Source of the DNA: Pavona decussata
Taxonomy: Eukaryota
Assembly: GCA_977016875.1 (NCBI GenBank)
Contig: CDRNST010000054.1
Span: 620,001-684,000, forward strand
Direction of reading: 5' to 3'
DNA length: 64,000 nucleotides
The position numbers and the translations under genes were made by a program. Under the pieces are notes generated by a model. That model was not told the origin of the DNA, searched no databases, and saw nothing but the letters and a program-made list of their open reading frames with translations. This document shows positions 8,601 to 9,521 of this stretch, in pieces (the stretch's first letter is position 1; the number at the start of each line of letters is the position of its first letter).

Positions 8601-8715
8601 CATTTAATTGGGATATGTAAAGTCCACTTTCCTCTTTAAAATTGTCACTCAAATTGTTCCTTGTTTGTCTTTGATAGTGTTTGAATGTCTCATCCTTTGG
8701 CCTACCGCTTTCATC
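5626..8715 (-). CDS. Zator/TP36-like DDE transposase (>1000 aa, uninterrupted; frame open upstream of 8652 with no AUG)
   Basis: NRDDQAGFRLD...IRVDGATDERP...SGGSFLNRVELVNG parallels the Zator motifs (S)xDDKA / VDGGPDENP / SAxNxVERRM; C-terminal Cys cluster and homeodomain-like tail (EVKMWFSHL). Confidence 0.8.
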   Translation of the reverse strand, partial: DESGRPKDETFKHYQRQTRNNLSDNFKEESGLYISQLNGISLDQFISFRSELCRNSHRSDCKECSLLINVAVDILHGGVCEVSKLYKKHFTSTYRSSNAVRRFMQLPVVVFRVGQKIGMQKLYVVEKEQGIDYKKVATLIEKFTLQPNLEVGGIGRDTLLALCKLASTESDRKLIKFAACEASNCSNKKAENRFGIQNISKLKEEVKNALKISQNIRKEVADLAMVREKSVLRCLGLYEPRESDSSDSDVECEAETLGKSEDEIQWVSDNESNSELDSTDEVLREAEESEMSLNEDPSKNNKPEKSARQKHMDPDEGLNKQPHIFSPNHDHLMLMLRDNQLNWFAFVEELRLLMRQYTSEVVNQVLLDFSENLLSMDLDDDEHERVEISRQAYLNSERVAVENETGLTDSESDDPEDWVGLNLQSEKGKQVLLKQREIIKRMAKRKEAKEIAEMNLLKRKVPNRVGSILRRFPNIGKDIEEFVSSKRCGADSWRRTGVTTFDGNRKRGPKASFRSIQEHLQTKYDAKIGYGTIVQLCVVRNKRKLSSKRYKGVAKVTCRRARKGFNLKFNPDAHYSCAMYKILDKLQLTDGHDKLLLNRDDQAGFRLDTTYTHCQHKGLYSEAQEVTTRTDFVNKYSSVLQTSSYLFMETLTNEERAAGLVKDHFSFKKNPSQHAADFKFLKATQEFKDYVSGKPVDCIRVDGATDERPSIQEVQFLWTEVHLVEEKICTCLTARNSGGSFLNRVELVNGCIARAHSNAFIPYTLNGSNFNKDGLNEEKLKENLEAATEVYIDRVQDAPFGNTTIKFFKGAHDENARYLQERREKLLIFLHGSKKAKQELQKTEPVLYKYFEEIWQVRNNHLVKGLPEQYVFFLYACYKPNCFHPVYKKGIPPTEPKWYDGGPTLRCLPMPMKDPNQPWGGHCKDCESCAGHYLSAEDSIASLTTNATRDSVMEPPSVVLKREFSKLTKTVDADNISDVEITRCAKETLLTSKEVKMWFSHLAEVSKRRKMGAKKAAATRQAKNGNYII

Positions 8716-9521
8716 TATAAAAAAGTATTTTCTTGACAGCTTTTCTGTTGTGGCAAGTCGGACTGTTCGTTTTGGGATTCAGGACTTGACTTATCTGCGC
8801 CTTGGGCTTGAACAGCACGATCAACGTCAGTTACATCACATTCACTTGAAGCTTCTACCTTGTCACTGCCGTCTTTCTGTTGCAAGTCTTCTTTTGCTTT
8901 TCTACTCAGCAACTTGTCAATTGTGATTTGTGGACTGGCTTGTGGTTGACCCTCTTCTTTACTTTGCTCTTTGTTATCTCTCTTTTTCTTCTGCAGGAGT
9001 GACTTTGCTTCCTTTTTCTGCAATAATGTAAGCTCGTCTTCTAATTTTCGCTTTCTTTCTCTCAATGGGGTCATCTCTTGGGTTAGGCGCCTTGCTCTTT
9101 CATCATTGTCAACATTTCTAGCTTTAACTCTTGATCTTTCGATCAAAGTCATTTCCATTTTTATTTCTTTCAGGTCTTCTTCTACTTCACCGATCCTTTT
9201 TGAGCGCAAGGATGGAGTTACTTTGGATGGCACAGGAAGCAGCTCATTGGGGGATAAATCAATTGCCCTGGACTTTTTCTTTTTATATAGATAACCATCA
9301 CTATCAACTTTCTTCTTTGCCAATGCTTGCAATTCTCCCTTTTTAGATAGTAAACGTGGATTTTCAACAGCCAGCTCATAAGCAGCCTCATTTAATGATT
9401 TACGGTACGCATACAAGAAACAACCAGGTTCTAGATTCTTGTAAATTGCACTTTCCTCTCTCAGCTTTTCAGGATCTATTTGTAATGTGACTTCAACTGT
9501 AGAATTGCTTTGAATCTGCAA
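8715..9521 (-). CDS. Last exon of the upstream gene of the element: NAB NCD2-like domain plus coiled coil
   Basis: LREESAIY..SLNEAAYELAVENPRLLSKKGELQALAKK..GYLYKKKKSR resembles NAB NCD2 (IRKYSAIY..TVNEAAAQLC..LLTRRDELFALAR..Y); heptad-rich region follows. Confidence 0.65.
   Translation of the reverse strand: MQIQSNSTVEVTLQIDPEKLREESAIYKNLEPGCFLYAYRKSLNEAAYELAVENPRLLSKKGELQALAKKKVDSDGYLYKKKKSRAIDLSPNELLPVPSKVTPSLRSKRIGEVEEDLKEIKMEMTLIERSRVKARNVDNDERARRLTQEMTPLRERKRKLEDELTLLQKKEAKSLLQKKKRDNKEQSKEEGQPQASPQITIDKLLSRKAKEDLQQKDGSDKVEASSECDVTDVDRAVQAQGADKSSPESQNEQSDLPQQKSCQENTFL

Follow-up and report, generated by a model that had tools for sequence, protein, structure and literature searches.

Here we describe a 64,000-nucleotide (nt) stretch of the Pavona decussata genome (contig CDRNST010000054.1, positions 620,001 to 684,000; hereafter the window), whose minus strand carries an 8.2-kb cut-and-paste transposon (4521 to 12754) with two overlapping open reading frames (ORFs). 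The ORF1 exon (8715 to 9515, preceded by an acceptor AG at 9517-9516) encodes an NCD2-like region, a coiled coil, and a variable acidic and serine-rich tail, within an open frame of 268 codons whose listed span is 9521 to 8715. The second frame, ORF2 (exon part 5643 to 8724), belongs to a transposase of 1,008 amino acids (stop at 5626) with a DDE-like core at about ORF2 residues 570 to 730 and lies in the −1 frame relative to ORF1. We focus on the junction of the two frames, which a first-pass annotation, made from the sequence alone, had proposed as a candidate site of programmed −1 ribosomal frameshifting.

On the minus strand, ORF1 ends with GAA AAT ACT TTT TTA TAG. As had been pointed out in the first pass, a U_UUU_UUA heptamer (8718 to 8724), read as UUU UUA in the 0 frame of ORF1 and as UUU UUU in the −1 frame, directly precedes the UAG stop codon (8715 to 8717), itself a possible stimulator of a shift, and the transposase is continuous in −1; coordinates and translations agree with this description. 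From the heptamer onward, the −1 frame reads FFIDESGRPKDE...NLSDNFKEE (in a longer reading, FFIDESGRPKDETFKHYQRQTRNNLSDNFKEE). The approximate limits given earlier for this frame, a closure about 18 codons upstream and about 100 codons free of AUG, also proved accurate, with a TGA found 18 codons upstream and the first AUG at codon 107 after the heptamer (8406). The 106 codons before this AUG hold a conserved C..H..CxxC motif. Only two heptamers of the X_XXY_YYZ type occur in the ORF1 frame, TTTTTTA at the junction and AAAGGGA at 9342. In addition, an allele in which AAT replaces ACT (8725 G>T, plus strand), present in contig L008 and in RNA runs X3 and X14, places a −1-frame TAA directly before TTT TTT, which reduces the overlap of the frames to only 10 nt and thereby pins the shift to the U_UUU_UUA heptamer.

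The structure of the mRNA was deduced from cDNA contigs of four public runs (X1, X2, X3, and X14, from four studies) aligned on positions 4517 to 9740; these are assembled contigs, which drop rare isoforms and rare slippage variants. In record 18 of X2 (4461 nt) and record 21 of X3 (4121 nt), the introns at 5022 to 5259 and 5422 to 5642 are removed, and both gaps are CT..AC on the plus strand, that is, GT..AG on the coding strand. The intron at 5422 to 5642 is absent from the contigs of X1, X2, X3, and X14, and that at 5022 to 5259 from those of X1, X2, and X3 (cut +2). A search of the genome assembly for the spliced joint 5421/5643 found no match, which shows that the X2 and X3 contigs are cDNA and not a processed DNA copy. 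Once spliced, the PHD-finger exon (5260 to 5421) is in frame with the transposase (...AAQQKTTGFCPCGQSDDDFMIACDHEKCKYQWFHYVCV...DWYCPEC), and the −1 frame extends over 1,090 codons counted from the heptamer, with the PHD finger at its end and a stop codon at about 4993 to 4995, in the start of the last exon (4993 to 5021).

Between 5643 and 9517, the same X2 and X3 contigs follow the genome without a break, the ORF1/ORF2 junction included, and they leave it at 9517; X1 (6971 to 9517) and the declared RNA library X14 (8331 to 8881) are likewise colinear over the junction. No RNA contig of the four runs carries an indel at the T-run. None of them shows a junction at the AG at 8715-8716 that the first-pass annotation had singled out, and none shows one ending at the AG at 8717-8716; the contigs show two joints, 5019/5258 and 5421/5643, and a loose end at 9517, and no others. 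A splice acceptor at 8716, which had been offered as the alternative to frameshifting, is thus rejected for the main mRNA, since contigs of four runs pass through this position unspliced with the other introns removed.

Farther upstream, the loose ends at 9517 in X2 and X14 match the sequence of an exon at 9851 to 9909, which is joined to the ORF1 exon (...SQLSLGPAAK|IQSNST...), is homologous to a segment of the Paramuricea gene model P0049, and has a 5′ limit placed at an acceptor-like site only. P0049, an ORF1 homologue annotated as “DNA fragmentation factor subunit alpha-like,” combines a CIDE-N domain (Pfam E = 3.8e-12) with an NCD2-like/coiled-coil part. A CIDE-N-like exon that looks similar to this domain lies in the window at about 12056 to 12262 on the minus strand and gives no Pfam match to CIDE-N; it also holds an A13 run. 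This exon ends in phase 0, the exon at 9851 to 9909 requires phase 1, and an in-frame ATG at 9948 would require a longer exon than 9851 to 9909.

Conservation of the −1 phase and of the shift site

To place the junction in an evolutionary perspective, we compared 17 lineages, comprising fetched contigs that encode ORF2 or ORF1 homologues and paralogous families of the same genome, the most distant of which share about 25 to 37% ORF2 identity. In every one of the 17, ORF2 lies in the −1 frame of a long upstream ORF that ends inside the 5′ end of the ORF2 frame. The site in the 0 frame is U_UUU_UUA or U_UUU_UUG in 12 lineages, G_GAU_UUU in four (L009, L021, L031, and L032), and G_AGU_UUU in one (L016), so that 16 of the 17 carry an in-phase U_UUU_UUA/G or G_GAU_UUU. 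The overlap of the frames is as short as 10 to 28 nt in several lineages, and the shift site always falls inside it. At the protein level, conservation of the ORF2 frame begins at the heptamer, and in the 14 aligned lineages, about 100 codons with the C..H..CxxC motif follow without a conserved AUG. At least nine of the 16 other lineages have an intact ORF2 of about 970 to 1,120 codons.

Homologous ORF1s were found in eight other lineages (28 to 65% identity), the lineages where comparison was possible. The C-terminal tail of ORF1 varies in length, from about 60 to 170 amino acids, and also in sequence, one tail consisting of repeats; in every case the frame is open until exactly the shift site. 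The ending ...FL* recurs in seven additional ORF1 homologues, one of them a spliced gene model from Paramuricea. Within the P. decussata genome, all three full copies of the element (99% identical) keep the arrangement of ORF1, heptamer, and −1 frame. A private indel in the window copy, a possibility that the first-pass annotation had wanted excluded by comparison, is therefore rejected: the other copies and 16 further lineages keep ORF2 in the −1 phase. A relative's copy, P0045, does continue from ORF1 into FFIDESGRPK... in one frame, for which an indel in the T-run is presumably responsible, and its reading frame breaks soon after; this copy is decayed.

Sequences that might stimulate the shift differ between clades. 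We ranked the stability of a 45-nt segment against all such segments across the lineage's own ORF2 of about 3 kb. For each of the 11 lineages that lie outside the window's clade, the segment beginning 5 to 10 nt past the site is within the most stable 0 to 6% (percentile 0 to 0.064) and forms a hairpin, with a stem of 6 to 11 bp that lacks homology from one clade to another. Within the window's clade, the six lineages rank at percentiles of 0.24 to 0.74, and RNAalifold on six relatives finds no conserved structure. For the 75 nt that follow the heptamer in the window itself, the folding energy is −7.0 kcal/mol (z = −0.25), and the window ranks at percentile 0.45. Single-sequence folds, sliding-window percentiles, and RNAalifold thus gave no candidate for a downstream structure in this clade, and the earlier statement that the window has no strong downstream pseudoknot holds for both the single-sequence fold and the clade alignment. 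What the clade does have is a 0-frame stop codon that abuts the heptamer in six of six lineages, as it also does in L025 and L029. At the G_GAU_UUU site of an umbravirus, −1 shifting is reported to depend on a 0-frame stop close by (PMC5009743). We infer that the adjacent stop, perhaps together with something unseen, aids the shift in the window's clade and that the efficiency of the shift there is low. For the window itself, the argument is at its weakest here.

Proposed mechanism and competing explanations

Taken together, we consider it probable that conserved programmed −1 ribosomal frameshifting yields an abundant ORF1 protein and a rare fusion of ORF1, transposase, and PHD finger. This is the reading that had been proposed from the window sequence, and it is supported by the RNA contigs, by the phase shared among 17 lineages, and by the sites. 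A single spliced mRNA would carry the overlapping frames of ORF1 and the transposase ORF. The majority of ribosomes would stop at the UAG at 8717-8715 and release the accessory NCD2-like/coiled-coil protein, and a minority would slip one base back on U_UUU_UUA (8724-8718) and continue in −1, giving an ORF1-transposase-PHD product with the predicted junction ...ENTFL|IDESGRP.... Only through this fusion would the first 106 codons of the transposase, which are conserved and free of AUG, be translated. By analogy with OrfA and OrfAB of the bacterial insertion sequences (IS) IS1 and IS3, the ratio of ORF1 to fusion might limit transposition, with ORF1 acting as a regulator or possibly as a DNA-binding or oligomerization module. 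We further think it likely that the whole ancient metazoan group of cut-and-paste elements to which the transposon belongs, in cnidarian and other marine hosts, makes its transposase only as a frameshift fusion, with interchangeable shift sites (U_UUU_UUA/G and G_GAU_UUU) and interchangeable stimulators (a downstream hairpin or an abutting stop).

Several points weigh against frameshifting as the explanation. The trans-frame product is a prediction. The window's clade is without a detectable downstream stem-loop or pseudoknot, and shift efficiency there may be very low. The site of L016, G_AGU_UUU, is noncanonical, and the candidate 5′ exons of ORF1 at 12056 to 12262 and 9851 to 9909 do not match in phase. 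Finally, the RNA evidence is limited to the window's own family (the Logan contigs of the distant lineages L009, L011, and L012 are colinear with DNA or intron retaining and give no splicing information) and consists of assembled contigs only, from which rare isoforms or slippage variants would drop out.

We considered four other accounts of the junction. A minor mRNA isoform could fuse them if a donor inside ORF1 were joined to the TTTTTTATAG| acceptor at 8716, the T-run serving as its polypyrimidine tract. The junction does resemble an acceptor, an AG in phase 1 of the ORF2 frame lies, in our reading, within about 15 nt of the T-run in every lineage inspected, and the contigs would miss a rare isoform. 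We nevertheless regard such splicing as unlikely, because no joint of this kind occurs in the four runs, whereas three other introns are removed, and because a constant −1 phase in 17 lineages is unexpected if tails of varying length are the supposed intron. ORF1 moreover stays open over its variable tail of 60 to 170 amino acids exactly to the T-run, the 0-frame heptamers and downstream hairpins would serve no role in splicing, and a conserved in-phase donor was not found, the candidate CAAA|GTAAAG lying in tail sequence that is unconserved in the L053 relative (P0040). Less probable again is a transposase that is not fused to ORF1 and is translated independently from the first AUG (codon 107, 8406), whether by leaky scanning, by reinitiation, or from a shorter transcript. 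This AUG encodes the Met of (F/L)MQLPVV, which is found in 11 of the 14 lineages aligned, and automated models in Exaiptasia (P0002) and Paramuricea (P0021) begin at it; yet it is replaced by Leu in L010, L016, and L021, and the 106 codons upstream of it are conserved as protein over deep divergence, with C..H..CxxC and no conserved start. Ribosomes would reach this AUG very inefficiently by scanning, having first to pass the several AUGs of a long ORF1, and the constant −1 phase, the heptamers, and the hairpins would go unexplained.

Transcriptional slippage on T6, adding one U in some mRNAs and putting ORF2 in frame, strikes us as a still poorer candidate, as a run of six is short for slippage by RNA polymerase II. 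There is a homopolymer at the junction, and slippage of this kind is used by some viruses and by bacterial IS elements (PMC5009743), but the T-run is free of indels in all contigs (from which rare variants drop out), the arrangement persists in four lineages with only T4 (G GAU UUU C..), and RNA hairpins at 5 to 10 nt downstream fit ribosomal stimulators. As for chance or decay, in which the locus would be a fusion gene broken by a private 1-nt indel and without function, transposon copies are frequently broken and P0045 has ORF1 and ORF2 fused in frame. P0045 is itself decayed, however, and comes to a stop soon after the junction, whereas the overlapping arrangement is found in three 99%-identical, recently mobile copies and in 16 other lineages, at least nine of them with an intact ORF2. 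This conservation across copies and lineages refutes decay, to which we attach almost no probability.

The transposon, its copies, and its transcripts

The limits of the transposon were established by searching the 602-Mb genome against itself. The element has the ends TGCACCAGTC...GACTGGTGCA, with imperfect terminal inverted repeats (TIRs) of about 45 to 58 bp, and the window copy is flanked by 3-bp target-site duplications (TSDs), TTA, at 4518-4520 and 12755-12757. TTA duplications also border the copy on C58, and an empty paralogous site, 88% similar, exists on contig C122. The three full copies (the window, C58, and C49) are about 99% identical, and that of the window is the uninterrupted one; the genome further holds one 5′-truncated copy and one internally deleted derivative. 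Together with the abundant spliced mRNA, the three 99%-identical copies point to current activity, which would make a frameshift cassette in this element directly testable.

Both of the other full copies have been hit by insertions. In the C58 copy, ORF1 contains a 337-bp insertion that resembles a miniature inverted-repeat transposable element (L007:7321-7657) and has a long internal inverted repeat. The C49 copy carries a nested TIR element of 1,328 bp (L006:7362-8689; against window 8763/8764), 40 nt upstream of the heptamer, which has perfect 29-bp TIRs (CATTACAACTTCACGCCGATTTAAGTGTG) and breaks the ORF1 tail there. In the window, the first long intron contains a stretch (10011 to 11271 on the minus strand) that is 73 to 82% similar to dozens of genome loci, holds a coiled-coil-like ORF of 82 amino acids (10171 to 10419), and probably represents an older nested repeat. 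Positions 9760 to 9830, in the intron upstream of the ORF1 exon, are taken up by a long (ATT)n/(AAT)n microsatellite.

Protein relatives of the element occur in Exaiptasia, in Paramuricea, and in many marine metagenome or Logan contigs, which indicates a cnidarian host. The same genome also houses other, deeply diverged families with intact ORF2s of 1,110 to 1,134 codons, namely L025 (C56:847936-851751), L030 (C2:257246-260959), and L035, L036, and L047 (on C42, C516, and C273). L025 and L030 each have a heptamer and a hairpin of their own, the stop abutting the heptamer in L025. Runs X1 to X14, which cover five organism codes and nine studies, contain near-identical (≥95%) copies of the element, with spliced cDNA in four runs; these matches may reflect close relatives, mislabelled holobionts, or a recent spread of the element between species. 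Record 1 of X1, a cDNA, starts in the flank and continues through the 5′ TIR (window 4520 to 4563) into the spliced ORF1-ORF2 message, and some transcripts may accordingly start outside the element and read through into it.

Relation to known systems

RNA viruses, retroelements, and bacterial insertion sequences are the typical users of programmed −1 frameshifting. To our knowledge, eukaryotic DNA transposons are thought to set their transposase levels by transcription, splicing, or small RNAs. In open-access full texts and a large 2016 recoding review (PMC5009743), no eukaryotic cut-and-paste transposon was found to be described as using −1 frameshifting; these sources cover bacterial IS elements, retroelements, and viruses, and the sole case of a eukaryotic DNA transposon that they yielded is Tec of Euplotes. 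If frameshifting is confirmed, the elements described here would offer natural and diverse −1 signals for metazoan ribosomes, including a clade that seemingly relies on an adjacent stop over RNA structure. It would also explain why annotation pipelines split such elements into two unrelated “genes,” as in Paramuricea, where the two parts go under the names “DNA fragmentation factor alpha-like” and “YNG2” and an internal Met is taken as the start of the transposase model.

The superfamily of the element is less clear than its architecture. The first-pass annotation had called it Zator-like, and the 3-bp TSD, the TIRs, and a predicted core fold resembling ISAzo13-family models fit this label; the part of the claim that finds no counterpart is a sequence match to PF07592, the family of the bacterial Transposase_36/ISAzo13 proteins to which we take the Zator transposase to be related, since neither a Pfam scan of the proteins nor a search of the genome with this profile gave a match at this locus. 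The predicted core (mean predicted local distance difference test score, 67.7) aligned with ISAzo13-family models of the ESM Atlas at template modeling scores of 0.44 to 0.46 by query and 0.31 to 0.75 by match, and a language-model feature search gave a lead toward an ISAzo13-like DDE enzyme (0.84). A Foldseek search of the PDB with the predicted core returned only weak RNase H-like matches, Pfam gave only weak homeodomain and PHD matches on the transposase, and neither Pfam on 16 homologues nor a profile search of the PDB was decisive. The protein is moreover much longer than those of Zator and ISAzo13 and comes with an ORF1 partner and a PHD finger. A Zator-like identity is plausible but unproven.

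In the Tec elements of Euplotes, the shift is +1. Like the present element, Tec1 and Tec2 are eukaryotic DNA transposons with a putative transposase ORF that requires frameshifting (cited in PMC5009743). In Euplotes, however, +1 shifting takes place at stop codons genome-wide (PMC4759687 and PMC12275403), in contrast to a −1 heptamer cassette confined to a single family of elements. Parallels to the shift sites come from viruses. Four of our lineages have the exact 0-frame G_GAU_UUU of umbraviruses and dianthoviruses, with a stop at or near the site, and pea enation mosaic virus requires a nearby stop for shifting (PMC5009743). These are plant RNA viruses, some with long-range RNA interactions, and they share neither sequence nor host with the transposon. 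The window's heptamer, in turn, is identical to that of human immunodeficiency virus type 1 (HIV-1) gag-pol, as the first-pass annotation had stated together with the −1 frameshifting of OrfA/OrfAB in insertion sequences, and the 2016 review agrees on both (PMC5009743). In HIV-1, too, translation in the eukaryotic cytoplasm gives much of the upstream product and little of the enzyme fusion (PMC5009743). Unlike HIV-1 and other retroelements, the present element is a class II cut-and-paste transposon with TIRs and a 3-bp TSD, and the stem-loop found downstream of the HIV-1 site has no equivalent in the window's clade.

Another comparison is with IS1 and IS3, in which an upstream ORF is followed by a DDE ORF overlapping in −1, with an X_XXY_YYZ site and often a stem-loop and/or a nearby stop, and in which low levels of shifting are expected to limit transposition (PMC5009743). 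No Pfam match to IS transposase families was found in our proteins, and the analogy is one of mechanism only. The host here is an animal and the mRNA spliced and multi-exonic, the sites are U rich (U_UUU_UUA/G and G_GAU_UUU) instead of A_AAA_AAG/C, and ORF1 is NCD2-like/coiled-coil and not a helix-turn-helix OrfA, with a product that also bears a PHD finger. The element resembles IS1 and IS3 in having an upstream protein that can stand alone, a catalytic DDE ORF that overlaps it in −1 without a start of its own, and a transposase that would be the fusion of the two; if this holds, the OrfA/OrfAB logic of regulator and enzyme would extend to eukaryotes.

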